Below, one piece after another: positions 1-38,415 of a stretch of DNA of 49,321 nt. The stretch is from Macrostomum lignano (taxonomy: Eukaryota): the NCBI GenBank assembly GCA_002269645.1, contig NIVC01002988.1:1-49321 (forward strand), given 5' to 3'. Position 1 is the first letter of the stretch. Every line of letters starts with the position of its first letter. Made by a program: the position numbers and the translations under genes. The notes beneath the pieces were generated by a model. The model searched no databases and was not told where the DNA came from. It saw nothing but the letters and a program-made list of their open reading frames with translations.

Positions 1-460
1 GCAGGCTGCTAGTAGGTAGTGTCAGCAGGCTGCTAGTAGGTAGTGTCAGCAGGCTGCTAGTAGGTAGTGTCAGCAGGCTGCCAGTAGGTAGTGTCAGCAG
101 GCTGCTAGTAGGTAGTGTCAGCAGGCTGCTAGTAGGTAGTGTCAGCAGGCTGCCAGTAGGTAGTGTCAGCTGGCTGCTAGTAGGTAGTGTCAGCAGGCTG
201 CTAGTAGGTAGTGTCAGCTGGCTGCTAGTAGGTAGTGTCAGCAGGCTGCCAGTAGGTAGTGTCAGCAGACTGCTAGTAGGTAGTGTCAGCAGGCTGCTAG
301 TAGGTAGTGTCAGCAGGCTGCTAGTAGGTAGTGTCAGCAGGCTGCAGTAGGTAGTGTCAGCAGGCTGCTAGTAGGTAGTGTCAGCAGGCTGCCAGTAGGT
401 AGTGTCAGCAGGCTGCAGTAGGTAGTGTCAGCAGGCTGCCAGTAGGTAGTGTCAGCAGGC
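1..460. repeat. 24-bp minisatellite (GCAGGCTGCTAGTAGGTAGTGTCA)n, intronic
   Basis: Direct periodicity; the array ends about 10 bp before the acceptor at 470. Confidence 0.95.
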
Positions 461-470
461 AGTTCAACAG

Positions 471-3400
471 ACTTTCTGTCACTGGCCGCACTGCAGCTGC
501 CGAAAATTCTGCCCCAGGCGCTGTCTGCGCTACCCCACGAACTGGCTGACAGTGTGGAGAAACTGCTGGACAGGGAGGCGCGTCACCGACCCCCGCGCAG
601 ATGTTTTCCAAGGTGAGTGAAAGCGCTAACGACAGCTGCCTTGAGCAAGCTGTTTGACGAAGATTATTGGTCCTGTTTAACTTAATCGATTCTTACCTAA
701 ATGACTGGGCTCTAACTCTTTTAGTCTAGCTTCGTCGCTGTTTGGCTGAAGGTTCAAGCCCTGTTTAGCCTCTCCTCGTCGCTGATTGGCTGAAGATCCA
801 AGCCCCGTTTAGACCCTCCTCGTCGCTGATTGGCTGAAGGGTCTAACCCCGTTTATCCTCTCCTTGTCGCTGATTGGCTAAAGTGTATAACTCGGTTCTA
901 TAATCTAACATAATCTGCAAATGAAAAAAGTGAAAGATTAAAGAATGTAAGCAATGTTACCAGTTGCAGTACTCTACTTAAGGAGTCGACAACAATATTT
1001 GGTCTATTAGGAATTTTCTATACTTAAATTTTTCGATAATTTACTGGCAAGGCGATTGCTAACCAATTACCCGCACTCGAATTGCAGATCAAGTACTTTC
1101 AAGACCCCCTGCTGCTGGCGCTGGAAGGCCTCTCCACTTGCGAAGCAAAGACAATGGACCAGAAGAGGGAGTTTTTCAGCCTGCTGATGCAAACAATGAT
1201 GCGGGAACAGTTTCCCAAGGTAAAAAAGGGGTTGGCACCGTTTTTTGCTTCACTTCTGTTTGGGAGTGGGAGCGAGAGGAGATAAAAATAATCACAAAAT
1301 AATAGTTTTTCCCACACTGTCCTTTCACTTTGTTTATCATTGGCTTTTTATTTAGCGGAAGCATTGTCAGGAAATTTCAATTGTTGAACACATCTTAGTG
1401 GGCTCGCCTGTTGCCCGTTTCACCTGTCTACTATAGAGAATATGACATTGTTTAGGGGATCAATTCCCATTTATTTGAGCTTAAGGAATTTTTGCTGAGC
1501 TCTCTTCCCCTCTGCTGGGTTGTTTTCTCCTCTCCTCCTAAACTCTCCTCTCCACTCCTGAGTTCTCTTCTCCTGAGTTCTCTTCTCTCCTGAGTTCTCT
1601 TCTCTTGAGTTCTCTTCTCTCCTGAGTTCTCTTCTCTGAGTTCTCTTCTCCTGAGTTCTCTTCTCTCCTGAGTTCTCTTCTCTCCTAAGTTCTCTTCTCT
1701 TGAGTTCTCTTCTCCTGAGTTCTCTTCTCTCCTGAGTTCTCTTCTCTTGAGTTCTCTTCTCCTGAGTTCTCTTCTCTCCTGAGTTCTCTTCTCTCCTAAG
1801 TTCTCTTCTCCTGAGTTCTCTTCTCCTGAGTTCTCTTCTCTCCTGAGTTCTCTTTTCTCCTGAGTTCTCTTCTCCTGAGTTCTCTTCTCTCCTGAGTTCT
1901 CTTCTCTTGAGTTCTCTTCTCCTGAGTTCTCTTCTCTCCTGAGTTCCCTCTTCTCCTGAATTCTCTCCTCTCCTGAGCTGTTTTCTCCTGACCCGAGTTC
2001 TTTTCTCCTCTGCTGAGTTCTCTCCCTTAATCTGTTTCCCCCTTCTCAACCTTGGTCGCTTGACGATTTCCTTCATCCCTTGTTTAAGACTAACCAAAGC
2101 CTTTATCCGAGCTACAGGTGTATATGTGCTTCTCATCCCAATGCGCCAGTACTAATGCTTGTCTCCGGTTGTTTTCGACTTGATTTTTTTTGTTTTGTTC
2201 AAGCAGATCAGCGCGGAAGTGAAATTCGTGACAGATTCATCCCGGGATTTGCTCAGATTTCAGACTCGGATTACGACCAGCTTTGGCTCTTTCGATGGAA
2301 ACAACCTGTCCGAGATTTCACGAAAGGTGGCAACACTGAGCTGTTTAAACCAACCAGCCTGTCAATCATGCGAATTAAAACTGGATTTGCAGAGTCGGGG
2401 GCTGAATGAGTCTGGGCCATTGATGGCGCTAGTCGATGCAAAACAATCAGACAAAAGGCTTGACATCAGAAGTCTGGAGGAAGGCTGCTTTTTCAGGCAG
2501 TGAATTTATACTGGGCTATCACTAATTAATTGAAATTTGTCGATGAATTTTTCTCTAAAATTAGAGCTGCATTTATGAGCTGACGGAAATTTAACAAGCG
2601 CTTTCAGGTGACTTGAGTGCGGCAGCCTATTTTAATTTTTTGCAGCTGAAACCGTGGCACAAGCAGCGAGTATTATTGATTCAATTATCTCTGAAAAAAC
2701 ACAGAACAGATTGAATCCTCCTTCTGAGAGCAGAGCAGGACTGAACCCCCCTTCTGAGAGCAGAGCAGGACTGAACCTTCCTTCTGAGAGCAGAGCAGGA
2801 CTGAACCCCCCTTCTGAGAGCAGAGCAGGACTGAATCCCCCTCCTGAGAACAGAGAAGGACTGAACCCCCCTTCTGAGCACAGAGCAGGACTGAATCCCC
2901 CCTTCTGAGAGCAGAGCAGGACTGAACCCCCCTTCTGAGAACAGAGCAGGACTGAACCCCCTTCTGAGAGCAGAGAAGGACTGAATCCCCCTTCTGAGAA
3001 CAGAGCAGGACTGAACCCCCCTTCTGAGAACAGAGCAGGACTGAACCCCCTTCTGAGAACAGAGCAGGACTGACCCCCCTTCTGAGAACAGAGCAGCTCC
3101 AAGGTGAACGCGTCTGACTCCCGCTCCATGGTAGTGCATAGCCCTCCTGCAAACAATTACTTTTTGCAAGCTTCCGTTCACCTTTGCAGGCTATTCTGCT
3201 TAAGCGGGTGGTGCCACTGCTGGTTGAGAACCTGCACCAGGCGGCTGAGCTCACCCACTTCGTGCTGCCCTGCCTGTTCCAGGCGGTTGTGCAGGCCACT
3301 CGGGTTGAGTTTGCTGCTCACCTGTGCGAGCCGCTGCTGGAGCTGCTGCGCCGGCCCAAGACTGCTCAGGTGCGGCCTGATTCTGTGTGCGCGTTTGCTT

Positions 3401-6400
3401 GAACAAATGTAGGTCATGAAGGCTCAACAGTTTTGGCACCTTCAAAATTTTTGGCGTAGCTCAAGTATGCACGGTACCGTTAATTTTTACCTTCAATAAG
3501 TAGGCTTTGCCCATTAATCAGTGAATGGTTGCAGATTTTATTGAATTTTCCTCATCCTTGATCTTGTTGATTAAATGGCGAGGCCACTAGTGGATTATCT
3601 CAGGGTCTTTCAAAATTCACTCGTTTCTAAACAGAACATCTGAACCTTTGTATTGTTTCTTCAAGTGATTTTGCGAGCCATTTTCCAAAGTCGGGGCTCT
3701 AAACTCCATCTTAGGAATTAGATAGCAAGAAACCTCTTGGCCCTACCTTTGCTTCTCTGAATATTGGCATTTGCTATGTACCATTAACTTGTAGACCAGT
3801 CTGGTCATAGTCGAGCACATTGATGTTCTGGTTGACAAACTCTCAGACGAGGACATCAGAGAAGACCTGCTGCCTCTGGTGTTTGCGATGCTGGAGTCCA
3901 ACAGCGCGTCCGGACAAGTAAGTCTCGGCGTTGGTGGGAACCTGGGTGACTGGTTGAAGATTTGGTTAGATATCTAGGAACTTTACGAACTTGTGAGGCA
4001 CGGGTGACGCGTTAAACACTTGAATGTTGCAGAGTAGATTTTACACCATTGTCCCGCACGTCTCGCAGGAGGCGGCTCTGAACTCCTTCGCTGTACTGCA
4101 AGATCACATCGACGAGCAGACGATGCGCCGGCTAATTCTGCCAAAGGCGAAAGCCGTCTTCTGCCGCAGCTCCAGCCTGCTGCCTGTGAGTAAAGATTCA
4201 GACAGTCATGTTACAGTTAGCCTACTCATAATAGATAAAAGTGCGTTTTATCGATTCTTCAGATGCAAATCAACGCGCTGGCCTGCATAGATCAGTTGAT
4301 TGATCGGCTGGACAAGATGATCATTTTGGAGGAGATTTTGCCGTTCCTTCTGGAAATCAACTTTACGGACACCGACATTTATATGGCAGTTATTCGTGAG
4401 TAATGTCATCTTTTTTACTTGTTCAGTTCAGTCAAGGGCAATTCAGAAGTAATCGTTAATTCGACAGATATCTACAAGCATATGCTTTCCGACAAGAAGT
4501 TCGGCCTGACCTTCAGCCTGATTGCCACTAAAGTGCTGCCGCACCTCATTCCCTACACTGTCAATCCAAATCTGAGGCGTGAGGACTTTCGCGTTGTCAT
4601 GGAAACGCTCAGTTTGATGTGGATGCGTCTGGAGAACGGCCGGTCCGCTCAAATGAAGCTGACGGAGGTCAACGGAAGCGACTCGATGGAGGACTCCGGG
4701 TGAGGATGCTGAAAAAGCAGGGTGGCACCGCGATGACTGTACTCTCTTCTACAATTACACAACCATTATAAATAGCCAAAGACACCGAGTTCCATTCCGA
4801 ATGCAGCCAGATATTCTGTGCATCCTGTGTGAGCGAGTGCCTGCAATGTGCATCGTGTGTGTGAATCGTCGTGTGCTTGCCTCCTGCATGGTCGCCTTAA
4901 TTTGAGGCAATATTCAAAGCCCTTTGCAACTAGCTATGCTTATATTTCTGATGCTCTTTCCACACCCTTGACTCGCAAGATTAACCTCAGTTAGATCTGA
5001 TTTTATATCAACACAGCACCGAATAACACTTCTGGTCTTTTTTCCGATAAGACGTCCAACTGCGGTGTCCTTGACGTCGAAAGTGACGCACCCGATCATT
5101 TTCTGGGCGTTTGCGGAGCGTTGGTGGGCAATTGAATGGGCTGATTTAATGCGTCCAGAAAGTTGTCTACCTGGATTCAGTTTTTACTATAGAGCTTAGT
5201 AGAGTTGTAAGCGCACGAAATGAATTTAGTTCCGAAAATGAAAACTCTTCAGCAGCCACACCAGGCCGCCGCTCATCACCATGCAGCAGCCGAGCTTCGA
5301 GTCTGAACTGACGCTAATGGTAGACGATGACGACAAGTTTCAGCATCGCAGGCGGAGCTCCTCCGGTCTGCAGCGCAAGGAGCAGATTAAGAAGCTTAAC
5401 GAGACAGCTACCGGTGTGCACTCCAATCCAGGTAGGGTTAGGGCCTGTTCGGACTAACACTTATCTACGGCTATTGAATTATTAACTAGCCAGTTCTTTA
5501 TGATCAATAAGCTTGATGGCGATGTGTTGAACTTATTCCATAATTAATTCGCATATAAGCACTCCTGAGTCTGATTGCTTTCCAGATTTATAGTCAATTT
5601 TATTTGTAGTGTATTGATTGCAGAATGTTTGCTTATCCAGACACTCCGGATCAAAAGTGCGAAAGCCCGGTCTGTCCCCGATCCGACAATGTGCTAAGCA
5701 GCGCTGAAAAATTTCCCGGAGTCACTTTGTTCCGACCAATTATCCAATTACAATGCCAAGCAGGCTTTAGCTGACAGGTGAGCCAAATGCTTGTGACAGC
5801 TGAGCCGATCTCATGCAAGCATCCAAGATGGCCGTGACGAATTGGACCCAGTGAGACTTGCTGCAAAAATCCAGTGATTTATGACTTCCAAAGCCGTCGT
5901 TTTATCATTATTCTAATGGAGAAGCTTTTTTTGTCTGCCATTATTTGGCATGATGAGTGGAGCATGGTCCCACACTTTGCTAGAGTTCTTTGCGACGAGT
6001 GCTTTTGGGATTTCGTTATAAGGCCGAGCAAAAACAAGAGAATGATCACGTAAAATTGATGGAAGCGTTATTATATCATCAAAATCAAGTGATGTAGAAA
6101 AACATTTTTTAACAACTCGGACTGCGAGGGAAGATGGAGTGGCTGTCGGAGCTTGGGGTTAGGGAGAGCTAGGGAGTGAGGTGGCTGTCGGAGCTTGGGG
6201 TTAGGGAGGGCTAGGGAGTGAGGTGGCTGTCGGAGCTTGGGGTTAGGGAGGGCTAGGGAGTGAGGTGGCTGTCGGAGCTTGGGTTAGGGAGGGCTAGGGA
6301 GTGAGGTGGCTGTCGGAGCTTGGGGTTAGGGAGGGCTAGGGAGTGAGGTGGCTGTCGGAGCTTGGGGTTAGGGAGGGCTAGGGAGTGAGGTGGCTGTCGG

Positions 6401-9400
6401 AGCTTGGGGTTAGGGAGGGCTAGGGAGTGAGGAGGCTGTCGGAGCTTGGGATTAGGGAGAGCTAGGGAGTGAGGTGGCTGTTAACAAAGATTTAACATTT
6501 GAAGGAGTAAATTAAAAGCTTTGACGAGTGAAGGGGTCTGAGGACTTTGCTGGAAAAAATTCATGCTGGAATGACTTCCTTAGTAAGCGACAAGTCCTTA
6601 GTAGAGCTACAAGCTATCATATGCCGTCCAAGGCCTGCACAAGAAGCCCGGCCAGTTCAAGACCGAATAAAATTCGCAACCAAGCGAGCCAAACCAATTT
6701 TCGCAGACCTGTCGGCCGCTCCGCTAAGCAAGCGCATCGAGGCCATCTCCAAGCTGTTGGAGGCGAGCAGGGCAGGCGATATAACCAATGCGATATCGCG
6801 GTACCGAGACTCGCGAAGGCGCAGCTCCCTGACTCGGCAAACTTCAGAGGACAATGTGATGCGAAGGCCCAGCCATGGGAACCCGAGTCCCAGTCGCCTG
6901 TGCGACTCAGGTGCTGTCTCTGGGATGAGGAAAGATGGGAAAGGGATGTGTTGAAAAAAAACTGATAAGCTGAGGTTGGAAAACATTATAACACTATAAG
7001 GAATAATAGTACTTAGACTTTTGGGGAATTCTAAAGGCTATAGTGTTACACATTACAGTGCTAAGTAGCCTCAGATCTTCTATCACAGAGTGGTCGTATG
7101 TCTCAAAGAATTAGCTTTGAGGGATTTTCGTGTCTTACAACGGGCTCCCCTGACACCGAAATCTGCTCTTAGTTCGTCCTAATGAAATGATTTTCTGTGT
7201 GCCTACTAATTGTATGAGTACATGCTCAACAAAAATAGGGGTACGAACTTGAAGCGTAAACATTACAGAAATGACTGGTCAGTGATTCGGTCATTGAGTT
7301 AGCATTAGTAACAATATCTGGATTGGCCCATGCCAAGCCCCATTTAGCTCATACTATCCACTGTCGCATGCTTTGGTCCGTGTGTCTCGTTATACCATCT
7401 CGCAAGTAATCGCAGCCTAGATGACTATTTATTTTGTTTTTTTTCATCCTTTCCTGGTTACTAAGCGGTCTGTATCAGACTACTGCATGCTCGCTCGCAC
7501 TCGGTAGCTGACTTGCACATCACTATTTTGTTTTCCTATGCCAATGTAAGCCGTTGTTTACTTTTTTATGCCGGATAGCTTTTCTTTAATAGCCTCTTTA
7601 GCCATCTACATCGGAGTTGGATGCCCTATCTGTTTATCAGGTCAGTTCAATAGGCGGCCACTTGAAGACACTTGTGTGCGCTATTCTTCGCTTGCAGCTT
7701 GAGAGACAATGCAGTTGGCTCCTTCCTGTCCCTGATGGATTTAGAATATGGCCCCAATTATGATCACGAGCACCGGTAATAGCAGTTGAAAAGAGAGACA
7801 GTGTACAGGTAGCACTATAGCTGGGTAACTCGAGTTCAACAGTGCCTACTAGTGGACAGATGAGCAATTCAGTTTAAAAAGACGACGTTGCATGCCGTCA
7901 GTAGGCTTTGCATAAACAAATTATTTAATATCTCCTTTGAAAATCAATAGAAGAGATAGCGAGATAGAAATCGAGTTTAATAGGCCGTTTATTCATCAGA
8001 AACAACTTTGCTTTAGTCAGCTGAGTCGTACTCATAGGATGCAATGTAATTAGGGATGCTGATAAGCTTTCGTGGAATAAGCTTTCCCTTTTCGCTGCTA
8101 TTGTCAGATAAAATAGTTCGATATTGGATTGTTTTCTCAGCCACGGCTTCCAGAAGACGAGAACCTCTTCTTCTTCCAGTCATAGGTCCCGGGAGACGAG
8201 AAACTCTTCTTCTTCCAGTCGTAGGTCCCGGGAGACGAGAACCTCTTCTTCTTCCAGTCATAGGTCCCGGGAGACGAGAACCTCTTCTTCTTCCAGTCAT
8301 AGGTCCCGGAAGACGAGAACCTCTTCTTCTTCCAGTCATAGGTTCCAGGAGACGAGAACCTCTTCTTCTTCCAGTCATAGGTCCCGGGAGACGAGAACCT
8401 CTTCTTCTTCCAGTCATAGGTCCCGGGAGACGAGAACCTCTTCTTCTTCCAGTCATAGGTCCCGGAAGACGAGAACCTCTTCTTCTTCCAGTCATAGGTT
8501 CCTAGAGACGAGAACCTCTTCTTCTTCCAGTCATAGGTCCCGGGAGACGAGAACCTCTTCTTCTTCCAGTCATAGGTTCCAGGAGACGAGAACCTTTTCT
8601 TCTTCCAGTCATAGGTTCCAGGAGACGAGAACCTCTTCTTCTTCCAGTCATAGGTCCCGGGAGACGAGAACCTCTTCTTCTTCCAGTCATAGGTCCCGGG
8701 AGACGAGAACCTCTTCTTCTTCCAGTCATAGGTCCCGGAAGACGAGAACCTCTTCTTCTTCCAGTCATAGGTTCCTAGAGACGAGAACCTCTTCTTCTTC
8801 CAGTCATAGGTCCCGGGAGACGAGAACCTCTTCTTCTTCCAGTCATAGGTTCCAGGAGACGAGAACCTCTTCTTCTTCCAGTCATAGGTTCCAGGAGACG
8901 AGAACCTCTTCTTCTTCCAGTCATAGGTTCCAGGAGACGAGAACCTCTTCTTCTTCCAGTCGTAGGTCCCGGGAGAAGAGAATCGTTTTGCCTTTTCCAG
9001 GTCACCTTTCGACTCGGTCAGGTGCTGATTCTGCGTCATCTCCGCTGAGCGGACTTCGCATAGAATCCAGGTCAATATTACGACGCAAGCTACGGCCCTA
9101 CGCATGCTGGCTACAGCTGTCGTGCTGAATTTCTTATGGCTTCGAAGTGATTATGGAAAAGGAAACGAAGTTCTGAGTCCCAGCCGGTTCGAGTTCGAAG
9201 TTCACGAGCAGGACTAACAGCAGGGATGTCAGGGGGATATTGCTAGGGCTTTTATTGTGTAGAGCATTCTCGGGTTGCGTGTTTTGGCTGCATCTCTTCA
9301 CCCTGCCGTAGCCAATGGGATAACGATTCGGTACCCGCCAACTCAAGCAATAGCATTTTGAGTCTTCCCTAATTCCTCAGTAATCTTAATACATCCATGG

Positions 9401-12400
9401 TAGTTAGCTAGATTTTCATCATTACTTCCTTTCAAACTGCTTCACGTAATTATTTTAATCCTTCCATTTAGCTTAAGGAGAAATTTTGCAGAACCATCGC
9501 ACATTGGGAAATGAGATCATAAGCTCTCATAAGTGGTTCTATGAAAAGTGAAACAAGATTAAAAACTCTCTAACAACACATGCCGCATGCTTCTTTCACG
9601 AATTTCTAAATCCGATAAAACTTCTGACCTATCGCCTCGATAGCAGGTATACAAAACAAGCCTGTTCTCTCGTTGATGCGTTTCCTTTGTTGCCTTTAGT
9701 TGCACCGACTCCGACTGTCAAGTTTCGCTTGCACGAACGTCAGGCCGATTGCTCTCAGGTGTGCAGAAGATGTAACATGTGGTTGCCCAGTAATTTTTTC
9801 CGTTCCCAGATGGTTGCAGTTCAGCCGAAGCCAGGTGCAGTCGGGGGAAGAACGGATGTAGATGAGGCAAGGATAATAAGCTGAGAGGGCTAAGGTCTGT
9901 TGCAGAGTGGATGGCTTAGCACTCGTGTCTATACTGCTAAGTCGATATTGAATTCTCCACAGCCGCAAAGCTAGTGTTGCCCGCCCCATACCCAATTAGC
10001 TATGCAAGCAAAGAGCTGCTCAGGGTATGAAAGACAAAAGTTCTTTACGAATAAAAATTCTAAGACCAAGCTTTAGTCCATTTATGGATTGTGGAACTTT
10101 TAGTGTTCCATTGCTTAAACCGGATACTGTATTTTGACAGTTATATTGTAGCTTTGCAGACTTTACTCAGTAAAGGATCTAAAAAATGAAATGCACCTGA
10201 CACCAACCTCACTCATTCGCATTCAGTAGCAACATCTCGTTCGGGGATGAAACCTTAGGTTACCCATTTGCGTCACGTGACGACAAGACGTGCCTTCTAT
10301 TAGTGATGATAAATCGATTAAATTCAATAAATTTTAAACCTCGATGCACTTTCTTTAAAATCTTTCTGTATTCGTGTAAAATCATTTCCACCGTTTTGTT
10401 TCCATTTGATGGATTTTTTAACCAAGGCAAGCCAGCACTGTCACCGCCCCGGATGAAACATATCCTGTTTCTTTCATGTAAAATGCGTTTTGAAACTACA
10501 GATGTCGCATAATCTTGGCAAGCTTTAGTTCAAGTGAAACACCGTCTTCCCCCTGCAGGCGAGGACCCCGTGGTGAAGATGGGAAAAACGGGAAGCAGTC
10601 CGTCCTTCAGTCTGCGCGCCAGTCCTCGGAAAGGCTCGGCAACTGACGTATTTTGTGCCAGCGGTACCGCAGTGAGTGGCGACAAACTTTGATCTTCCTA
10701 TTTGCAGCAGATAAAGCCCCTAGCTTATAGTTAGTGACTAGTAGAATAGTTTTCAATTGGTAGTAAGCACTTTTTGTTATCTGTGCATAAATCCATACAG
10801 GAGCTGCAGTCAACTCACTGAGCCATGCCCATGCACGATGCGTTCCTAATTCCATTAGGTATCAGCCTACATACTCATATACCCGGTATACTCTTCCCAG
10901 CCCTAATCCCATTAAGTTCCGTTGATGCTTACGAGTAAGTTACGCTGCTGAAGCCTAACTTGCAAATCGAACTAAATAACATAATAGATGGAGCGCTGAT
11001 TCACTCTAGCTAGTCCATCCGTACAGTTCAAGCGGTGGAGGCTTTTGTTTTGTTGTGCTTTTTTAGAATTAGATTTTCCGAATGTCAGATTGAAACGCGC
11101 AGACAAAAATGTACCTTATCCCCTAGAAACTGAAACCAGAGCACTCTCGCAAACCTCAGTTTTGATTTAATCGCAACCCCGAAAAAACTGTCAGTCCAGC
11201 GCATCGTCAGTTGCTGGCGACAGTGCAGCCTCCGCTGCATCCCGCATTAAAAGCGGCTCGCTCGGCACCCATCCGGACTGTCTGCGGGTGCACCAACCGC
11301 CGCAGCACTCCCTCTCCGTGCCCATCATTGTCACTACATCGGCTGATGCTGATGCAGAGCAGGCAGCGGCTCAGATTCTACTCCCTGAGGATAACAGAGG
11401 TCGACAGAGGCTGCTACATCTCCACCAGCATCACCAGTACCATCAGAACCAACAGCAGCAGCAGCCGCAGCAGCCGCAGCAGCACCGCTGGCCGAACCGC
11501 TGCCAGCAGCCGCCCAGGCTGATGATAACGCATCACTTTGAGCAGCATCAGCCGCGCAGTCGGAGTCTGGACGTGACGCCCCATCCTCCAATCGGGGAGT
11601 CGATGTCTGCTGCGAGGCGTCACTTGTACAGCAGCAGTGTACGAGCGCCGCTGCTGCACCTTCTGCCCTTTATCCAAATCTCTCTGTCTACAGTTTGATT
11701 TGCTTTTGAATTTTGAAAAGCTTAATTGATGTTTTGCTAGCCACGTTGTATCAGTCGTGTGTCTGTCCAGTTCATGTGCTCTGTGCCTGATGCCTCACCA
11801 GTCAGGCAATCTTTTATATTGTCCTGTGTCCATTGACTATCTACGAGTATCCCTGTAGCCTCTGCGTTCCTTAACTTATATTTGAACTGCTTGCTGGATT
11901 TTCAAATTCGTCCCATTTCGGCTAGCTGCCAAAATCCCATAGCTTTAAACCTCAATATTTTAATGATTTCTTTGAAGTGGCCTTACAATTCGAAGTTTAA
12001 AAGGAAAAATTGCACCAGCTGTCAATGAGGTAAGGGGCCCCTGGGCTGCTCGAAACGCAAAGATTCAAGCCAGGAATTTTTCCTGAAGGCATCTTCTAGT
12101 GAGAATTCATCAGTTTCCCACGATCTAGCCGTATTTTGTTTTATGTACCCTATTCCCTCACGATGGGGGCTGAGAAGGACAGGGCGGTTACACCAGCATC
12201 CATACTCCCAAAGTGCTTCATCATTTCGCAATTGCGATTTTTATGCCGTAAAAAGCTCTTCCAATAATCTCTACCGGCTTTATGGATTTATCAGCCATTT
12301 TGGCGGAGCAATTCCAGCTCAAGCAGACGATGAAGCTATATTTGATGAGGCCCGATTCCTCAGTGTCGCACGCCAAGTCGCAATTTCCTGGATCGGCTGC

Positions 12401-15400
12401 TGCCGCCTCAGTAGCGGAAGAAATTCAATTGGCAAAGTGGTCGGCTGCTCAATCCATCAGTATCCTCTGCTTCATATCTCCCCGGTGTCTCCGTGCATTC
12501 TACTGTTCTTCTCTAAGCCAAGGCGTTTTTCTGTCTTGCCAAACTATTAAACCGGAAGCCGTTCTGCCTGGCGCAGCCGAACTCGCGAAGTCGGGAATCT
12601 CGCGCGTCATTCATGAGCAGACTGAGAGTTTCTACAAGTAGCCAAGCATCCCAAGCGACTTAAACTTCCCATAAGACGATGCTTCTCTGCTTATTAATTT
12701 ACACATTTGGCTGCTTCTTTATATTTGCTACACATACATGTACATCATTTACTTTTTGACTGTCTTGGAAAATGTCTTGAAAGCCAGGTTTTCAATTACT
12801 GGGCTGTGTGCACCTTGGCGCACTTTAAGCGACATTGTCACACAACCGGCGAGAGGCATTGCTGCCCATTCCGCCGACTCCCCTGAGAGCGGATACGTAC
12901 GCAGTCATACGCACAGGCACACACTCACACAGGAGTGTACAGCGGCCCTAACTTTATTTATCGTTAGGCATGTACACTTCACTGTGCCTTGATGGTTGGC
13001 CCTCAAAGCCGTTAATTGCACGAGCAGAGCCAAGCCAAGATTTCAATTTAGCCTCAAAAAATTAATGCGACTGCACTTGGAATCGAGCCTGGGCCGCTGG
13101 CACATCAGAGCGCAGCGCTAGACCACCCTGGCACAGTTCACATGCAGATTGGACCATATTATCAGTATTTCGTTAATTCAATACTAGCTCTGCTCCTGAC
13201 ATAACTGTTTAAACTGCGTTTATCTACGTGTATTATTTTTCCCGGGATATTTAACCTACACCACTTTCTTTCAATGTTATTTTTGACTAGTATTGTCAGT
13301 AAGACACGTGAGCATTTTTTACAAACGTATCTTAAAATGGCAACATTTCCAGGAAGACGCCAACCGCAGCTTCACGCTCTCCCTGCCGACGGCGGTGCAA
13401 CCAAGGCGGCACAGCGTCAACACGTCTCCGCAATCGGCAGCTGGCAGCTCCTCAGTAGCTTCATCATTCGCCGGGGCTCACGGCGGCAGCGGGTGCAGCG
13501 GTAGCGGCGGAAGTCTTGCCGCAGGCGGCACCACAGCTGAAGGTCATCAGTTCTTCTCGCCGCCCGGCTCCAAGCTGTCAAGCCGGAGACCGTCAACGTG
13601 CAACCTCACGCCGGTGCGTCCGCTGGAACGGGAATAGCTTGGGGCGGTCAATGGGCGGTCCATTGAAGCCTAATGAGAGCGTAGTTTCTGATATGATGGG
13701 GTTTTTATAAAAACACGAATGTTTCTGAAGCTAGAAGGTTATGTGGATTGATACGGGGGGGCATAAAAACCCGAAATATCACAACTCCGAAAACAAAAAG
13801 TACCGTTGGAGGTTGCTAGAACTTTTGGGGTTTGTGATATTTCGGGTTTGTGATATTTTGAGTTTGGGATATTTCAGGTTTTTGATATTTCGGGTTTGTG
13901 ATATTTCGGGTTTGTGATATTTCGGGTTTGTGATATTTCGGGTTTGTGATATTTCGGGTTTGTGATATTTCGGGTTTGTGATATTTCGGGTTTGTGATAT
14001 TTCGGGTTTGTGATATTTCGGGTGTGTGATATTTCGGGTTTGTGATATTTCGGGTTTGTGATACTTCGGGTGTGTGATATTTCGGGTTTGTGATATTTTG
14101 GGTTTGTGATATTTCGGGTTTGTGATATTTCGGGTTTGTGATATTTCGGGTTTGTGATATTTCGGGTTTGTGATATTTCGGGTTTGTGATACTTCTGGTT
14201 TGTGATATTTCGGGTTTGAGGTATTTCGGGTTTGTTATAATTCGGGTTTGTGATATTTCGGGTTTGTGATATTTTGGGTTTGTGATATTTCAGGTTTGTG
14301 ATATTTCGGGTTTGTGATATTTCGGGTTTGTGATATTTCGGGTGTGTGATTTTTCGGGTTTGTGATATTTCGGGTTTGTGATACTTTTGGTTTGTGATAT
14401 TTCGGGTTTGTGATATTTCGAGTTTGTGATATTTCGGGTTTGGGATATTTCGGGTGTGTGATATTTCGGGTTTGGGATATTTCGGGTTTGTGATATTTCG
14501 GGTTTGTGGTATTTCGGGTTTGTGGTATTTCGGGTTTGGGATATTTCGGGTTTATGATGTTTCGGGTTTGTGATATTTCGAGTTTGTGATATTTCGGGTT
14601 TGGGATATTTCGGGTGTGTGATATTTCGGGTTTGGGATATTTCGGGTTTGTGATATTTCGGGTTTGTGGTATTTCGGGTTTGTGGTATTTCGGGTTTGGG
14701 ATATTTCGGGTTTATGATGTGAAGTACTTTCGGAGTTGTGGTTTTTTGGGTTTGTGATGGTGCCTCATTGATACTACATATCGGCAAAATTTTGGTACCA
14801 GGGTTCCCCATGCCCTATACCACCCCCTGTAGACTAAGGCGCTCCACTTGGAGACTTACACTTAGTAAAATGACATTCATGTCCATCCAAAACTATCTAT
14901 TGAGTCCGGCAAACTGGATTCTGTGCTCAAGCGGAGTCAGCAGTGTTCTCTTGAAGTCTGAGAATAGCAACAACAACCCCTACATGACTGAACTGCTGCA
15001 GGATCGGGCTGCCGGTGACTCGGGCTCCTCAAGGCGATCCAGTTTCAATGCCCTCAGCGACACCGTGGTAAGCATATAACAGAATTATTATTATGATCTC
15101 CTATTACTTTCTTAAGATTGTACATGTCATTATCAGTCAACACAAAGCAGAGAAATCAGTTGGCTAAGACTCGTATCATATCTCTTCTGAGTCTGAGTCT
15201 TGCTCTCCGTTAGTTAGTTAGTTAGGAGAGTCTCACTCTCCATCGGAGGAGTCTCACTCTCCATCGGAGGAGTCTCACTCTCTATCGGAGGAGTCTCACT
15301 CTTAATCGAAGGAGTCTCACTCTCAAAAGAAGGAGTCTCACTCTCCATCGAAAGAGTCTCACTCTTAATCGAAGGAGTCTCACTCTCAATCGAAGGAGTC

Positions 15401-15632
15401 TCACTCTTAATCGAAGGAGTCTCACTCTCAATCGAAGGAGTCTCACTCTCCATTGGGTGAATCTCACCAGAGCTTACTTTATTGCTTCTCCAGCTAATAC
15501 GCAGGTAGTAAGTTTCGTTGGCAATTATAAAAATGTTGTTCTCTACTTCATGCTACTGATAGTAGAACCCATCATTGTGTTTTTTCACTCTTTCAGATGA
15601 ACTTCTTTTCTGGCAGCGGCAGAAATGGCTGA
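471..15632 (+). CDS. SCYL2: SCY1-like protein 2 (SCYL2-like pseudokinase/HEAT-repeat protein), 5' part outside the window
   Basis: Phase-compatible GT-AG exons 471-612, 1088-1219, 3190-3369, 3795-3917, 4069-4185, 4263-4395, 4468-4699 and 5253-5431. They give LPHELADSVEKLL..RHRP.AQMFSK|IKYFQDP, KRVVPLL..FVLPCLF, EDLLPLVFAMLE, RLILPK, QINALACIDQL..LEEILPFL and IYKHMLSDKKFG..IATKVLPHLIP, colinear with recalled SCYL2 (IPFFDD, FVLPNVL, VLPMVYRALE, VNSLVCLGK, DILPFL, KVLPHLIP). Less certain low-complexity tail exons: about 6605-6910, 10559-10671, about 11200-11638, about 12295-12460, 13353-13613, about 14833-15067, and terminal 15597-15632 (MNFFSGSGRNG*). One apparent 1-bp frameshift near 590. Confidence 0.85.
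733..883. repeat. About 44-bp unit, roughly 3.5 copies, containing CTGATTGGCT
   Basis: CGTCGCTG(A/T)TTGGCT-like core recurs near 733, 777, 821 and 866. Confidence 0.75.
1088..1219 (+). CDS. SCYL2: SCYL2-like exon (IKYFQDP...QFPK)
   Basis: TTGCAG acceptor, AAG|GTAAAA donor, phase 0/0. Confidence 0.85.
1490..2040. repeat. Pyrimidine-rich 15/17-bp minisatellite (CTCCTGAGTTCTCTTCT)n
   Basis: Direct periodicity; explains the spurious minus-strand ORF 1471-2136. Confidence 0.9.
2705..3097. repeat. 30/31-bp minisatellite (GAGCAGAGCAGGACTGAACCCCCCTTCTGA)n
   Basis: Direct periodicity, about 13 copies. Confidence 0.92.
3190..3369 (+). CDS. SCYL2: SCYL2-like HEAT-region exon
   Basis: TTTGCAG acceptor, CAG|GTGCGG donor, 60 codons. 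Confidence 0.85.
3795..4699 (+). CDS. SCYL2: SCYL2-like HEAT-region exons 3795-3917, 4069-4185, 4263-4395, 4468-4699
   Basis: Four exons with GT-AG introns, matching phases and a continuous SCYL2-like translation. Confidence 0.88.
6137..6481 (+). repeat. 42-bp G-rich minisatellite with a G-quadruplex motif in each unit
   Basis: Unit GTGGCTGTCGGAGCTTGGGGTTAGGGAGGGCTAGGGAGTGAG, about 8 copies. Confidence 0.92.
7988..7993 (-). promoter_or_regulatory. Candidate polyadenylation signal of the peptide-precursor gene
   Basis: AATAAA on the minus strand downstream of the stop at 8137. Confidence 0.45.
8137..9105 (-). CDS. Secreted multi-copy peptide precursor (prohormone-like): signal peptide plus 21 x FSS[P/L/S]GTYDW flanked by KKKR
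   Basis: ATG start; N-terminus MRRAVACVVILTWILCEVRS|A fits the basic/hydrophobic/small-residue signal-peptide pattern; KAKR precedes the first peptide; 21 perfect 39-bp units; nucleotide variants are largely synonymous in this frame; AATAAA lies about 145 nt after the stop. Confidence 0.85.
   Translation of the reverse strand: MRRAVACVVILTWILCEVRSAEMTQNQHLTESKGDLEKAKRFSSPGTYDWKKKRFSSPGTYDWKKKRFSSPGTYDWKKKRFSSPGTYDWKKKRFSSPGTYDWKKKRFSSLGTYDWKKKRFSSSGTYDWKKKRFSSPGTYDWKKKRFSSPGTYDWKKKRFSSPGTYDWKKKRFSSPGTYDWKKKRFSSPGTYDWKKKRFSSLGTYDWKKKRFSSSGTYDWKKKRFSSPGTYDWKKKRFSSPGTYDWKKKRFSSPGTYDWKKKRFSSSGTYDWKKKRFSSPGTYDWKKKRFSSPGTYDWKKKSFSSPGTYDWKKKRFSSSGSRG
13353..13613 (+). CDS. Probable SCYL2-like Ser/Gly-rich tail exon
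   Basis: TTTCCAG acceptor, CCG|GTGCGT donor, open frame EDANRSF...CNLTP. Confidence 0.6.
13827..14755. repeat. 16-bp minisatellite (GATATTTCGGGTTTGT)n
   Basis: Direct periodicity, more than 50 copies. Confidence 0.95.
15225..15452. repeat. 21-bp minisatellite (GGAGTCTCACTCTCAATCGAA)n
   Basis: Direct periodicity, about 10 copies, in the last SCYL2-like intron. Confidence 0.92.
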
Positions 15633-17977
15633 AACAAAAGTAAAAAAATCCGCATGCATTGGGTTCGAAGATAATCTTTGATGGTCGAATGGTCAAAAAA
15701 TGTTACCAATATTCATTAGCATGAGATGAATTTTTTCCTGCTTGCTTAAATTGTCATTTATCATTAGGCAATTTGAAAAAAACAATCCAATGTAAACTGA
15801 AGTTTTTATCGGTTCAAATATATATTCTTTTCTGCTACAAGGAGTGATCGCTTGAGCATGGATAACTTAAAGCAGAAGAACGCTGTACTCTCGAATCGTG
15901 CAGATTTTGGCGAGATGGGAAGTTTTCAGTGTTTTCAGCACTGAATCCCCAATATGTCACTCAAGGACTATCCGAACTCCAAATTGAAAATCAGCCTGTT
16001 GAAATAAGTTTAATAAACTTGTGAGCAATACTCAACGCACTGCACACTTCCTTTGTTTGCAATTCGGAGTTCAGGCGGCATATTTAAAGTTTGTTTTTAG
16101 AAACTAAAAACATTCCTAAATTTGCACGATTTTGCGAGTGTAGCGTTCTTCTAAATGTACTTTAGTTGTCCGTGTACGTTTTTGACAGGTACATGGTAAT
16201 ATCGCTATACCTGGAAAAGTGTACGGCTAGTAAGAAAAGCAATCACAGGTTTTTTTTGTACTTTTCTATTGTTGCCGTGAAACCATGGTTTTGAACACGC
16301 GATATTGGTGTCTGTCACAATCAGTAACAACTTCGATGCATGCGCCATCATTGACCTGCTGGAGAACATATTTTTGCAAACAGCTTTGTACTTTAAAATA
16401 TATTAGCAAATTTGCACTTCATTTTGTGTTGTAATGAAACCTGAATGAACAAATTACACATAAAATTGCTGGTTGTCTCAGAATTAGCTCGTTCTTATTT
16501 TAATTCGCTTCTGTTCTGCAATTTTTTTCCATTGCCTTAGAGGTTACGATCCTATAACATTATCTACGGCATGCTGGCTTACTGAGTTCTCTCTCACCCT
16601 CTCTCCCTTGTTGCCATGGTTCACCGATAGACTCCTCAATTCTATCCTTCAGTCTCCATCTGTTCTCATGCTGTACACTCGCGGCCTGCAGTCCACGTGA
16701 GTACTGATGAGGGACGGAGAGGCGCGTTATTGGCCAATGACAACAGCATCATTCTGTCTGTATCATTTGCATTGTGCTCAGCAAATTATAGGCCTGCAGG
16801 ATGCCCTGTAGCAGTGCTATTGCCTACCCAACCTACTCATCCAGTTTCAACTCTGTTCTCTCTCCTCTCCGCATTCGCTGCATTGAGCTTGACCCATACA
16901 GCCCACCTCCCGCCCGTCACGAAGACAGGGCGTGGCTCAAGTGAGCAAGGGGCCATAGGGGCGACGGCCTGAGCTGATACAGTTTACGCGTATAATAGAC
17001 CACAATGCCTTTCTCGGCAACGGTCTGTAATCTACGCTATTGCAGCACCATTGTTTTGCGCCTCTCTTTCTATCTTAGCCACGCGTCTGACGTCGTACAA
17101 AACGAGACAAGTTTATTGAACGAGTAGCCTCGCGGTTAAGGCCATCTGGTTGAGTAGTCGGAGCTTAATTAAGAGTTCGCGTGGTCGGGGCTTTGCCTGG
17201 AAACAGAGACAAACAACAAGCTTGAATTAGCTCTCCTTATAACTGCTCTCAGGCAAATCACTCTTGTCTCTGCTGGTTTAGCAACGGCCCGGACATTTCA
17301 TTTGTTTTGATTTGTATACTAATCGAAAGTTTGTTTGGCCAGCAAAAACATAAATAAATGACAGAGACAAAAATATCGAGTTATACCTTAGCATTGACTC
17401 ATGCTCGCAAACAGTAAGAAAGGTTTTATTAAAAATCTGTGTAGCCTTTTGGAACTACAGGGATTGCTGGTGATATTCAATCACGCCTTCGAATGTTATA
17501 TTATACTCGTACTAGCTAGCAGGTGCGGGAACTCGAAGTTTAGCACGCAAAATGAATCAAATCATTATTGAATAGTTAGGCAGGAGATTAGTTATTAAGG
17601 AGGTACGGCACATTAGAAACAGAGCTGAAAGCGGTCAAAGCTGACAGACAGGTGACAGGTGGTTAAGAAAATGTCTAGAAGAAATCAGTTTAAAAAATCA
17701 ATGTTAAAAGCAGGGTTTATCGGGACTGGCCCGTATGCACGTTTCATAATTCGCATCTGTGCAACATTCTCGTTTTAGATCCAGTAAAATCTGAAATTCA
17801 GCGTTCGGATGTGGCTTATGAAACGCGCATTTCCTAAAATCTAAGTAGGGAAGATTCTACAGACTAAAATTAATACGCAATATTTTTAAATGAACCACAC
17901 ACAGGCTGGGGCTGTTCTTTTGGTTCAGAGAGACAGCTACATGCGTAGTTCAAGGGTAAAATGCACAGCTGATAAAA

Positions 17978-17983
17978 TTTATT
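17978..17983 (-). promoter_or_regulatory. Candidate polyadenylation signal of UGCG
   Basis: AATAAA on the minus strand about 125 nt after the stop. Confidence 0.45.
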
Positions 17984-18107
17984 ATTTAAGTGGACGCATC
18001 TCATCGTGTGGGTAAAACTGGGACCTCGTCAGCTGTGCGACGTAGTCATCTAGCAGACAGGTTGGCTTGGAATTGTCATCATCTACCGCGCACGCATGCA
18101 GACGCTG

Positions 18108-19450
18108 TCAAACCGCCTGCTTGGCAGCGCTGAGGTTGACAGGCAGGCCTGGCAGCTCCACCGTGTTGCCGCCCCACTGCAACCGGAAGCGCTTGTCCCG
18201 CCAGACAATCTCTGAGTGGAAGAGCGATCGAACCACCGTGATCGGCTGGGTTCCGATCGAGAATAGCCACGTGAACATGAACGCCAGCCGGCTGAACATG
18301 AGCGGCTCGGCCGGGTCCAGACAGCTGCACAGCAGGGTATAGTCGGCCAGCAACCAGATCAGGCAGTGGGTTAGTAAGTACACAATCGGATTGACCAGGC
18401 TCGGAAGCAGGAAAGCGAACGCCCAGGCACCCATGGCGCCGGACACGAGGCACTCGGCAAGCATCTCGAGTACCACCTGGAGAGCAGTAGGGAACTTGCA
18501 TAAACTTTGGAAATCCCAATACACTAAAACTGGATGGTTATTAGCAGTCATTGAGCGCCGCATTTACTCACCAGCTGTGGCACCATTGCGACGCGCAGCT
18601 GCAGCCAGCGTATCAGACGCCTACGCAGACCTCTAACTTCTCCACTGCCGTCCTGCAGCGCGGGATAGTGCGACAGCGTCATCTTGTAACCGTTGTCAAT
18701 GAAGTGCTGCGCCACGAAGAAATCCTCGGCTAGGTAGCGGCCGAAGTAGGCGAGACCGCCCGGCTTCTTGTCGATGATGGGCTTGCGCAGCAGGCAGGAC
18801 ATTCCCGTGCAGCAGTTGATCCCCAGACAGTGGGCGCTAATGTAAAACTTGGCATGCGTGCAGCCGAAATGCGTGGAATGGGCCAAGTTGCGAAAGCCAG
18901 GTCGCTGCTCAATGAATGGCATCTGGTGGACAATTCCGATGTCCTTTTGCGACATGCACCAAACCATGTCCATCAGCGCCTCTGGTCGCATTTTAACGCC
19001 GCTGTCTGAGACCATCACGAGGTCGTACTTTGCTGCCGAGTAGCCCTGCATCATGTTGTTGATCTTGGGATTGACGTTGTGACGCACAGGTGACGTAAAT
19101 ACCCGGGTGTCTACTTTGGGGTACTTTTGCATCAGTGTGTCCACCACCATAGTGACGGCATCGTCCGCGCTCTCCAGGCAGAACAGCAGCTCGTAACGGG
19201 GATAGTCCAGCCTGAAGTAGGTCTCCAGGTTGCTGTACACATTCTTGTCTATGCCAACCAGCGGCTTGATGATGGACACGCCGGGCAGGCCGGCCTCGAC
19301 AGCAGCCGGCTCGAAAGCTACCTTCTTGTAGAAGTGGGATCTTGCGAAAATGATGGCCATTGTGTGGGAAAAAACCAGCAGGAACAGAATGACCATCACG
19401 CCAGCAACGATTGCCAGCTGGACAAAGTAGACCCAGTTGTAGTACGGCAT
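18108..19450 (-). CDS. UGCG: Ceramide glucosyltransferase (glucosylceramide synthase, GT21), 415 aa, exons 19450-18572 and 18476-18108
   Basis: N-terminal TM helix; GVSIIKPLVG; NPKINNM; SDSG; H in CTHAKFY; TGMSCLLRK; YLAEDFF; RxxRW (RRLIRW); C-terminal WRDKRFRLQWGG; 95-bp intron GTGAGT...CTCCAG in phase 0. Confidence 0.96.
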
Positions 19451-21680: not shown

Positions 21681-26396
<4,716 letters not shown>

Positions 26397-30718: not shown

Positions 30719-33700
30719 ATGTATATGCGCATTGAAGTGCAGCCTGCACCCACTTGTCCACTTGGCAATGCCCGCACTCGAAATTTAAATGAGACTCTGT
30801 ACTTGCGAGGCCAATTGGAAGGTCAGTGCGTGACATTGGCTGTTCAGCGAAAATTAGGCGAGGTCGCAGGTCCATCAAGCTTACTTCAGTGCACAGTTAT
30901 AGCTGTTTTGGTTAGTGTAGATGGCGAGAATCACCCGTATCAATTGGATGGCAGCAGCTGCACTGATGGCATATTCAAGAAGGTTGTTACTATTCCTGCT
31001 GGCGAAGAGAAAGCGCTGGTCCGGTGAGCATGAATCACTTGGCTTGTTTAAAAGCTGTAAGCTGGCTGTGGCATCTAAATGGTCGAGGAATGAGATCTGG
31101 ATTGGAGGGAAAGGGGGTCTGGATTGGTGGGGAGGGGGATCTGGATTGGTGGGGAAGGGGATCTGGATTAATGGGGAGGGGGATCTGGATTGGTTGGGAG
31201 GGGGATCTGGATTGATGGGGAGGGGGATATGGATTGATGGGGAGGGGGATCTGGATTGGTGGGGAAGGGGATCTGGATTGGTGGGGAAGGGGAGCTGGAT
31301 TGGTGGGGAGGGGGGATCTGGATTGGTGGGGAAGGGGAGCTGGATTGGTGGGGAAGGGGATCTGGATTGATGGGGAGGGATCTGGATTGGTGGGGAGGAG
31401 GATCTGGATTGGTGGGGAGGAGAATCTGGATTGGTGGGGAGGAGGATCCGGATTGGTGGGGAGGGGGATCTGGATTGATGGGGAAGGGGGTATGGATTGG
31501 TGGGGAAGGGGATCTGGATTGGAGGGAAAGGGGGTCTGGATTGATGGGGAGGGGGATCTGGATTGATGGGGAGGGGGATCTGGATTGGTGAGGAAGGGGA
31601 TCTGGATTGATGGGGAAGGGGGTATGGATTGGTGGGGAAGGGGATCTGGATTGGAGGGAAAGGGGGTCTGGATTGATGGGGAGGGGGATCTGGATTGATG
31701 GGGAGGGGGATCTGGATTGGTGAGGAAGGGGATCTGGATTGATGGGGAGGGGGATCTGGATTGGTGGGGAGGGGGATCTGGATTGATGGGGAGGGGGATC
31801 TGGATTGGTGAGGAAGGGGATCTGGATTGATGGGGAAGGGGGTATGGATTGGTGGGGAAGGGGATCTGGATTGGAGGGAAAGGGGGTCTGGATTGATGGG
31901 GAGGGGGATCTGGATTGATGGGGAGGGGGATCTGGATTGGTGGGGAGGGGATCTGGATTGGTGGGGAGGGGGATATGGATTAGTGGGGAGGGGGATCTGG
32001 ATTAGTGGGGAGGGGGATATGGATTGGTGGGGAGGAGGAGGATCTGGATTGGTGTTAAGAGGATTAGATCAGACAGACATTTTTATTTTTCACTGTCATA
32101 TCCCGTTGCAGTCTGGATCGCGTGATGGTGCGGTCCTGTCAGCAGAGTAAGTGGAGAGAGGCGATGGCTAGTAAAAAGGCGACTCTTGAAAACTTCAATA
32201 TAAATATTGCAGGTATGTCAGGTGAATTTCCTTTGCTCGTTTCTCCTGTGTTTTAAGAAGCACGAGTTTTTATTTTTGAATTTCAGATCCCAGCGTAAAT
32301 TTTTCGGCAAAAACAGTAAAAAAACTTCGAATCAATTTCTACCTACCCGAGGTAGATAACCGCACTGAGGCATCGACAACGGAATTCCAGGGCGTCGGAC
32401 CGGCCCACGGCGCCGCCGCCTCCCAGTCCGTTTGTAAGCGGCTGTCACTTTGTCACTCGTCTAATCACTTCATGTCACTCGTCTAATCACTTCATGTCAC
32501 TCGTCTAATCACTTCATGTCACTCGTCTAATCACTTCATGTCACTCGTCTAATCACTTCATGTCACTCGTCTAATCACTTCATGTCACTCGTCTAATCAC
32601 TTCATGTCACTCGCCTAATCACTTCATGTCACTCGCCTAATCACTTCATGTCACTCGTCTAATCACTTTATGTCACTCATCTAATCACTTTATGTCACTC
32701 GTCTAATCACTTTATGCCATTCGTCAATCACTTTATGTCACTCGTCTAATCACTTTATGCCATTCGTCAATCACTTTGTCGCTCGTCTAATCACTTCGCT
32801 TTACTCGTCCAATCATTGTCACTTGCATCCAATCCCATTATCGCTCGCATCCAATCACATTTTCGCTCACATCCAATCACATTGTCACTCACATCCAATC
32901 ATTGTCACTCACATCCAAGCATTGTCACTCACATCCAAGCATTGTCACTCACATCCAAGCATTGTCACTCACATCCAATCATTGTCACTCACATCCAATC
33001 ACATTGTCTCTCACATCCAATCACATTGTCACTCACATCCAATCACATTGTCACTCACATCCAATCACATTGTCACTCACATCCAATCACATTGTCACTC
33101 ACATCCAATCACATTTTCACTCACATGCAATCATTGTAACTCATCCAATCACTTTGTCACTCACATGCAATCACTTTGTCACTCACATGCAATCACTTTG
33201 TCACTCACATCCAATCACTTTGTCACTCACATCCAATCACTTTGTCACTCACATGCAATCACATTGTCACTCACATGCAATCACATTGTCACTCACATCC
33301 AATCACATTGTCACTCACATCCAATCACTTTGTCACTCACATCCAATCACATTGTCACTCACATGCAATCACATTGTCACTCACATCCAATCACTTTGTC
33401 ACTCACATCCAATCACATTGTCACATACATCCAATCACATTGTCACTCACATGCAATCACATTGTCACTCACATCCAATCACATTGTCACTCACATCCAA
33501 TCACTTTGTCACTCACATGCAATCACATTGTCACTCACATCCAATCACATTGTCACTCACATCCAATCACTTTGTCACTCACATCCAATCACATTGTCAC
33601 TCACATCCAATCACATTGTCACTCACATCCAATCACTTTGTCACTCACATGCAATCACATTGTCACTCACATCCAATCACATTGTCACTCACATCCAATC

Positions 33701-37900: not shown

Positions 37901-38415
37901 CGTTAAAAGCTTAAAAAAGATTACTACATGTTATAATGTTTTTAATTGACAACACAGCGAAGCATCATCAACTTACTCGCGTATATTATTACTGAATCAA
38001 CCTGGCACAAGGCCAATAAACAGGAAGAATTAAATAAAATAATTAAATAGCAAAAAAAGCGGCAACGCTCCTATGTACATTGGGGACAAGCAAAACACTG
38101 AAATCGTAGGAGAAAATTTCGTTTCAAATTGTTGCTTAGCACACATCAAATGCCTGCCCTGTGTTGGCCGAAGTCAACTCTGATAAGATTGCGCAGCGAC
38201 TTCATACAAAATCGAATGCTTTCTTGGGTCTACTGAATCAATAAAAAATATTATATACCAATATTCACAACTAATAGTACATATAGTTGGAAGAAAATAT
38301 AAATCACAATTACAATAACGCATCTCTCGACCTCATAACAGAACACAAGTACCGGTACGTTTAAAAATTGTGCAGGTTGATTTTAACAAACAGCTCATAA
38401 GCCCGACTAAACAAT

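Follow-up and report, generated by a model that had tools for sequence, protein, structure and literature searches.

Clade-restricted multi-copy peptide precursors form a recognised class (PMC6188537). Two described systems stand closest to the gene reported here, the multi-copy peptides of xenacoelomorphs (PMC6188537) and the spp and npp prohormones of planarians (PMC2953531). Their precursors begin with a signal peptide and a short spacer, followed by tandem peptide copies at dibasic or tribasic sites, and the peptide is conserved in an otherwise divergent protein; they are confined to narrow clades and were found by architecture, not by homology. The same description fits a gene on the minus strand (8137..9105) of a 49,321-nucleotide stretch of Macrostomum lignano DNA, hereafter the window (contig NIVC01002988.1 of assembly GCA_002269645.1, positions 1 to 49,321). 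This gene encodes 21 tandem copies of a 9-mer peptide and belongs to a small, previously undescribed family with at least three further locus types in M. lignano.

Architecture of the precursor

Open reading frame (ORF) reading and the gene call on the contig give identical coordinates for a complete, intronless coding sequence (CDS) of 322 aa, which encodes a multi-copy peptide precursor. Residues 1-20 (9046..9105), MRRAVACVVILTWILCEVRS, have the canonical features of a signal peptide, with a Met-Arg-Arg n-region and a 12-residue hydrophobic core (maximum Kyte-Doolittle 12-mer 2.87), and cleavage would probably fall after VRS or VRSA. This assignment is based on charge, Kyte-Doolittle hydropathy and small residues, and the paralogs described below have the same layout. 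Residues 21-41 (AEMTQNQHLTESKGDLEKAKR) comprise the acidic spacer AEMTQNQHLTESKGDLE and the first basic site, KAKR (8983..9045). The array itself (8164..8982) consists of 21 units of 39 bp, each encoding 13 aa with the sequence FSS[P/S/L]GTYDW followed by KKKR; the peptide is FSSPGTYDW in 16 units, FSSSGTYDW in three and FSSLGTYDW in two. KKKR closes 20 of the 21 units. Unit 20 has KKKS, with AGT (Ser) in place of the P1 Arg at 8203..8205, a change that would weaken the predicted site between units 20 and 21. Tandem Repeats Finder (TRF) reports a 39-bp period with 21.2 copies at 8155..8982, 95% matches and no indels. Units 5-11 (8554..8826) and 12-18 (8281..8553) are the two copies of a 7-unit, 273-bp higher-order repeat, identical at 269 of 273 bp.

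The array is followed by FSSSGSRG and a TGA stop (8137..8163), a decayed 22nd unit that differs from an array unit by ACC>AGC, TAT>CGT, GAC>GGC and TGG>TGA. An earlier note, made from the letters of this stretch, had described the signal peptide, acidic spacer, KAKR, the 16, 3 and 2 copies, the single KKKS and the tail FSSSGSRG, and the ORF reproduces that layout exactly. Its suggestion that FSSSGSRG might be amidated fares less well; because the tail is decayed and is not conserved in the paralogs, which end in NEE and SME, an amidated product is unlikely to matter.

Related genes in M. lignano

A HMMER search run exhaustively over 1.84 billion representative proteins returned short, high-identity relatives, all from M. 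lignano: PAA48327.1 (Mlig001773g8), PAA83548.1 (Mlig017890g3), PAA73271.1 (Mlig017890g1), PAA59548.1 (Mlig030851g1) and UniProt A0A1I8HD77. A word-indexed search of 5.8 billion proteins missed even the known paralogs when queried with the full ORF, and returned only three M. lignano clusters when queried with the family alignment. Two paralogous loci were read from the genome. In the first (L002), signal peptide, acidic spacer and EEKR precede eight copies of FSAPGTYDW with RKR or KKR, and the protein ends in SME. In the second (L003), signal peptide, spacer and HSKR precede one FAQAGTYDW and seven FVQPGTYDW copies with KKR, and the protein ends in NEE. A0A1I8HD77 contains five copies of FSAP[Q/H]AFDW. 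Invariant columns of the alignment are limited to K, R, F, P, D and W, and the family motif can be written F-[SAV]-[SAQ]-[PASL]-[GQH]-[TA]-[YF]-D-W followed by [KR]1-2-K-R, with the core F-x-x-[PA]-[GQ]-[TA]-[YF]-D-W. Unit counts are 8, 8 and 21 in L002, L003 and the window gene, and copy number varies freely between paralogs.

The proteins of all three loci start with Met-Arg, have a 12-residue core with Kyte-Doolittle values of 2.5-3.2 and small residues before the spacer, and their spacers are acidic, with a net charge of -2 to -4. Upstream of the ATG, the three loci have in-frame stops at distances of 15, 23 and 6 codons; at L003 the stop is the one 6 codons away, and an AG acceptor is absent between this stop and the ATG. 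The ATG is therefore genuine and the hydrophobic segment N-terminal, and an N-terminal extension through upstream exons is ruled out. The precursor architecture that the earlier note described is real and recurs in paralogs that are under purifying selection, as detailed below.

Several other matches were set aside. The top HMMER match, P0122 (E 2.8e-51), and most others are not homologs but unrelated proteins whose repeats are 13 residues long or basic. P0194, a 134-aa protein from a JGI metagenome, and P0217, of 247 aa, are also unrelated and have KR-spaced repeats of their own (GSGTQDW-KRE... and STEAFDWDRL-KR); in all likelihood these two arose by convergence, as multi-copy precursors of the Kex2/convertase type in other organisms. 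A0A1I8HD77 (P0136) carries the name 'Coat protein' in UniRef, an automatic label that is almost certainly spurious.

Evidence for a functional reading frame

The peptide core and the P2-P1 Lys-Arg pair are under purifying selection. Between the window gene and L003, the nine core codons (F, P, G, T, Y, D, W, the P2 Lys and the P1 Arg) show a proportion of synonymous differences (pS) of 0.97 and a proportion of non-synonymous differences (pN) of at most 0.05. All core residues are identical, the sole non-synonymous step being a path-averaging artefact of the Arg codons AGG and CGC. At peptide positions 2-3 and the P3 spacer residue pN is 0.67, and the untranslated regions (UTRs) and flanks of the two genes retain no DNA similarity. 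The signal peptide, the spacer and peptide positions 2-3 diverge between paralogs despite the conserved core. Variation within arrays follows the same codon structure. Of the eight variable columns in the L002 array, six are third positions with synonymous changes and two exchange K and R; in the window and L002 arrays together, third positions make up 12 of 16 variable columns, 11 of them synonymous, with K<->R swaps accounting for two of the rest. The P1 Arg and P2 Lys are present at nearly every junction, while linker length (KKR, RKR, KKKR) and P3 vary.

The window and L003 are also collinear over ~19 kb, sharing a glucosyltransferase gene (the L003 paralog has 63% aa identity to the window copy), conserved blocks, the peptide gene and a multi-exon gene on the opposite strand. 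This collinearity indicates that the peptide gene already existed before an ancient segmental or whole-genome duplication and was retained in both copies.

An open frame is by itself not beyond chance in a window so rich in repeats, where TRF returns 40 overlapping rows of minisatellites, of 16-45 bp period and present in tens of copies, and where several arrays yield ORFs of 170-600 aa. The peptide array is in fact also open on the plus strand (8124..9128, 334 aa), a frame that was rejected because the variable columns of the array are its second codon positions. In the minus-strand frame, six of the eight variable columns of the window array are third codon positions, and five of these six are synonymous (hypergeometric p ~0.01). 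The codon-position bias, the conserved paralogs, the synteny and the transcript-based gene model described below mark this as a real gene, and a fortuitous ORF is essentially excluded by gene model, paralogs, synteny and selection taken together. An Rfam scan of the window gave no match.

Transcript-based annotation and repeat collapse

The annotation of this genome is solely RNA-derived, from strand-aware StringTie/TACO assemblies, BLAT-mapped de novo transcripts and TransDecoder CDS (PMC5730564). The gene call carried by the contig at exactly 8137..9105 on the minus strand is therefore indirect evidence of a minus-strand transcript, the absence of which the earlier note had named as a refutation. 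Its two other refuting conditions, a missing signal peptide and a match to a described family, did not come true either, the signal-peptide features being canonical and no known family having matched. None of the other minisatellite ORFs is called as a gene in the 21 kb with gene calls.

The annotated product has 231 aa against the 322 aa of the ORF, a deficit of 91 aa that equals seven units, or one higher-order repeat. The annotated 7-unit intron is best read as a mismatch in repeat number between short-read transcript and genome, and the 273-bp higher-order repeat explains this false intron. Models of the paralogs are each four units short, with 85 aa instead of 133 at L002 (10001..10402) and 92 instead of 140 at L003 (10001..10423). 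Repeat collapse in transcript assemblies corrupts the gene models of this peptide family. PAA59548.1 (145 aa) additionally has frame-shifted stretches, in which EALCPT is the repeat in another frame. When the 322-aa product and the four possible 231-aa GT-AG models were looked up as exact sequences, no record matched; the GenBank product is presumably named a hypothetical protein, as are those of the paralogs.

These records qualify two further claims of the earlier note. The gene had been called unrecognised, and while its peptide family is indeed undescribed, the gene itself is annotated in GenBank at 8137..9105 on the minus strand. A repeat-masking gene finder had been expected to delete it, whereas the gene was truncated to 231 aa, seven units short, and not deleted. 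The precursor exemplifies how repeat collapse corrupts gene models, and whole-unit loss as false introns probably affects other multi-copy peptide precursors in M. lignano and similar genomes.

Proposed processing and alternative explanations

The reading that we favour, with moderate confidence, is that this intronless, transcribed gene encodes a secreted precursor that would be cut at basic sites into non-amidated signalling 9-mers of a lineage-restricted family. The N-terminal signal peptide would send the precursor into the secretory pathway, where a PC2/PC1-type convertase could cut after the K-R of each KKKR and after KAKR, and a carboxypeptidase E/D-type enzyme could then remove the basic residues. 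About 20 acidic, non-amidated 9-mers would be freed, mainly FSSPGTYDW, with FSSSGTYDW and FSSLGTYDW as minor forms. Their computed pI is ~4 and their [M+H]+ values are 1059.44 (FSSPGTYDW), 1049.42 and 1075.47, against 1043.45 for FSAPGTYDW and 1112.51 for FVQPGTYDW of the paralogs; since the peptide has no C-terminal Gly, the predicted product is a free acid with an N-terminal Phe and a C-terminal Trp. The freed peptides may serve as extracellular signals, most likely as a neuropeptide or peptide hormone.

We infer cleavage from the invariant P2 Lys and P1 Arg, the free copy number, the short non-conserved tails, the acidic spacers and the presence of a PC2 homolog; trimming, secretion, a signalling role and the cell type are likewise proposed from sequence features. 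The M. lignano PC2 homolog, RNA815_2403.2, has an in situ pattern that suggests nervous-system-specific expression, and its knock-down is lethal (PMC4490696). On these features we also infer that the precursor merits the label of prohormone.

Several observations weigh against this reading. The 9-mers lack the C-terminal amide that is common in neuropeptides. The intact protein, of ~36 kDa, would be strongly cationic (pI 10.4) and aromatic-rich, a composition also found in adhesives. AlphaFold, run on the single sequence, gives a weak beta-hairpin repeat with a mean pLDDT of 58, which speaks neither for nor against a structural role; mean values of the five models span 36 to 58, and a pLDDT of 90 is reached at no residue. 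Family identifiers and sequence strings were unmatched in the supplements of Macrostomum expression studies, of which the prostate and positional-screen data are incomplete. Finally, the motif was not found outside M. lignano among the matches listed, though congener transcriptomes are in the collection searched; these transcriptomes (Logan SRR28338163-65) contain an 85% ortholog of a neighbouring gene. Absence in congeners is nevertheless weak evidence, because short-read assemblies break on such arrays.

The same precursor and processing could instead supply exocrine glands, with the 9-mers acting as seminal-fluid allohormones of the prostate, water-borne pheromones or mucus or defensive peptides. 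Polyproteins of non-neuronal origin that are processed at dibasic sites have ample precedent in yeast alpha-factor, honeybee apidaecin and Drosophila Baramicin, and lineage restriction, a change from 8 to 21 copies, a recent 273-bp duplication and several paralogs typify reproductive and secretory families. In M. lignano, many secreted proteins restricted to the taxon are expressed in the prostate glands (PMC5977470). We nonetheless consider an exocrine product unlikely: the 9-mers are acidic, whereas antimicrobial peptides are typically cationic, old paralogs have kept the core to a high degree where reproductive proteins usually evolve fast, and the peptide sequence was not found in the incomplete supplements of the prostate and positional expression screens. 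Decidedly improbable is the specific proposal that FxxPGTYDW peptides are exocrine signals of a simultaneous hermaphrodite that serves as a model of sexual conflict, either an ejaculate allohormone or a water-borne pheromone; if it were true, the 21-copy expansion would reflect selection for dose.

A different possibility, which we regard as quite unlikely, is that the product works uncleaved as a secreted cationic repeat protein of structural, adhesive, eggshell or mucus type, with KKKR providing charge or cross-linking elements. The high pI, the Lys, Tyr, Trp and Phe in each 13 residues, the likeness to cation-aromatic adhesive and tanned eggshell proteins and the weak beta-hairpin prediction would all suit such a protein, and the KR ahead of the first unit could be a mere partial repeat. 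Against it stand a P1 Arg and P2 Lys kept at nearly all junctions where linker length and P3 vary, and the replacement of Tyr by Phe in the FSAPQAFDW paralog would speak against Tyr/DOPA cross-linking as the conserved function. Copy number is unconstrained, with some precursors of merely 133-140 aa, a confident fold is absent from the AlphaFold models, and the last basic site is followed by short C-terminal tails that are not conserved. Extremely improbable, lastly, is a transcribed minisatellite with a fortuitous frame and no functional product. The abundance of long-ORF arrays in the window and the opening of the peptide array in more than one frame speak for it, but the paralogs, one of them syntenic, have frame, signal peptide, core and basic sites in common although their synonymous divergence is close to saturation, and variable sites cluster at third codon positions of the minus-strand peptide frame only.

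The predicted 9-mer, an undescribed free acid ending in Trp and encoded at no fewer than four locus types, is a readily testable signalling-peptide candidate in a worm that can be made transgenic, is amenable to RNAi and serves as a model for regeneration, adhesion and sexual selection. The exact masses can be used for peptidomics, the unique UTRs for in situ probes and the shared repeats for pan-family RNAi.

Genomic neighbourhood

Candidate signals flank the peptide gene. An AATAAA polyadenylation-signal candidate, identified by motif only, lies ~145 nt past the stop (7988..7993, minus strand), and an ATTCAG hexamer (9125..9130, minus strand), similarly placed in L003, lies ~20 nt upstream of the ATG and is possibly a trans-splice acceptor or initiator. 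Trans-splicing affects 38.8% of M. lignano genes (PMC5730564).

Upstream of the peptide gene, the window, L002 and L003 share four short conserved blocks in collinear order and on the same strand. In the window they lie at 10533..10697 on the minus strand, at ~13287..13634, and ~2.2 and 6.0 kb upstream of the ATG; counterparts lie at 9085..9210 of L003 and 7841..7942 of L002. The clearest block varies mostly at every third base (AEPFRGLARRLKDGLLPV / TEPFLGLVRKLNDGLLPV / AEPLRGLARRLKPGLLPA), and no Pfam match was found for these blocks, which look like unannotated exons of a gene co-duplicated with the peptide gene. This gene and the peptide gene possibly share one trans-spliced transcription unit.

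Downstream of the peptide gene, exon pieces of the opposite-strand multi-exon gene (446..6951 on the plus strand of the window, 12277..19182 on the minus strand of L003) have 50-83% aa identity between the two loci, and those scanned against Pfam gave no domain. The ORF at 18548..19450 on the minus strand is 100% identical to the M. lignano ceramide glucosyltransferase BOX15_Mlig021767g2. The glucosyltransferase gene (18108..19450, minus strand; annotated product 415 aa) comprises two ORFs with a 16-bp overlap (18548..18563), an arrangement that would imply one very short intron.

Further along the window, a putative non-LTR retrotransposon has an intact 1113-aa ORF (21806..25147, minus strand) with a 279-aa ORF1-like ORF upstream (25497..26336, minus strand). 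The last ~250 residues of the long ORF match L002 17271..18024, and a second fragment, of 256 aa and close to the 3' end of the window (46908..47678, plus strand), has 43% aa identity to the overlapping stretch L002 17366..18115. ORFs at 40767..41297 and 45124..45669, both on the minus strand, resemble exons of a divergent G-protein alpha subunit, in which the switch region reads IGGHTNERRKW against the canonical VGGQRSERKKW, the catalytic Gln being gone. Minisatellite-dense stretches include 1..460, 13824..14718, 31094..35477, 38415..39215 and 42154..45140, and the longest spurious minisatellite ORF spans 604 aa (32757..34571).

Comparison with known peptide families

The proposal that the peptides fit no described family is borne out by the searches made, in that no described neuropeptide family, Pfam family or paper matched. 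A Pfam scan of the ORF gave sub-threshold, composition-driven matches only, and a literature search with the peptide strings, their variants and the paralog locus tags returned nothing relevant. The strings YDW, FDW, DWKR, DWKK and GTYD are absent from the text of the planarian prohormone catalogue and the eight supplementary files searched (PMC2953531). No published catalogue of M. lignano peptide signals was found.

Wamides (myoinhibitory peptide, allatostatin-B and GLWamide) likewise derive from multi-copy precursors and end in Trp. They carry a Gly amide donor before the basic site and, in protostomes, show W(X6)W-amide spacing. Membership was rejected on the Trp that directly precedes K/R in all units of all paralogs and on the single Trp per peptide, and RFamide or FMRFamide-like membership on the finding that RFG occurs nowhere in the ORF. 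Pedal peptide/orcokinin products have 12-20 or more residues with an FD..L/I...G.GF-type motif; the M. lignano 9-mer does not have this motif, the Pfam families are all below threshold, and this assignment was rejected as well. Achatin (G[FY]xD), a precursor of which has been reported for M. lignano (PMC6188537), is likewise a short, acidic, non-amidated peptide encoded in many copies between KR sites. It is, however, a Gly-first tetrapeptide with which the window 9-mer shares just a loose aromatic-Asp pair, and homology was not detected.

Beyond neuropeptides, yeast alpha-factor, fungal Kex2 repeat peptides, apidaecin and Baramicin are likewise secreted tandem peptides with basic sites, lineage-restricted and subject to fast copy change. 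These are of glandular, immune or unicellular origin and act as pheromones or cationic antimicrobials; the M. lignano 9-mer is acidic, unlike the cationic antimicrobials among such Kex2/furin-type polyprotein products. The decapeptides of mussel foot protein-1 and the eggshell precursors of trematodes are likewise secreted, Lys-rich, short tandem repeats with Tyr or Trp and a high pI, but they function uncleaved and have abundant Tyr/DOPA, whereas Tyr is 1 residue in 13 in the M. lignano array and is replaced by Phe in A0A1I8HD77, and the K-R pair is kept.

The closest likeness remains with the xenacoelomorph multi-copy peptides and the planarian spp and npp precursors. The pattern F-x-x-P-G-T-Y-D-W occurs in the text of neither paper (PMC6188537, PMC2953531), and those studies had neuronal expression and mass spectrometry. 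On this comparison the peptide sequence appears to be new, and the gene that encodes it is of a known kind, a clade-restricted, neuropeptide-like multi-copy precursor, and not a new kind of system.

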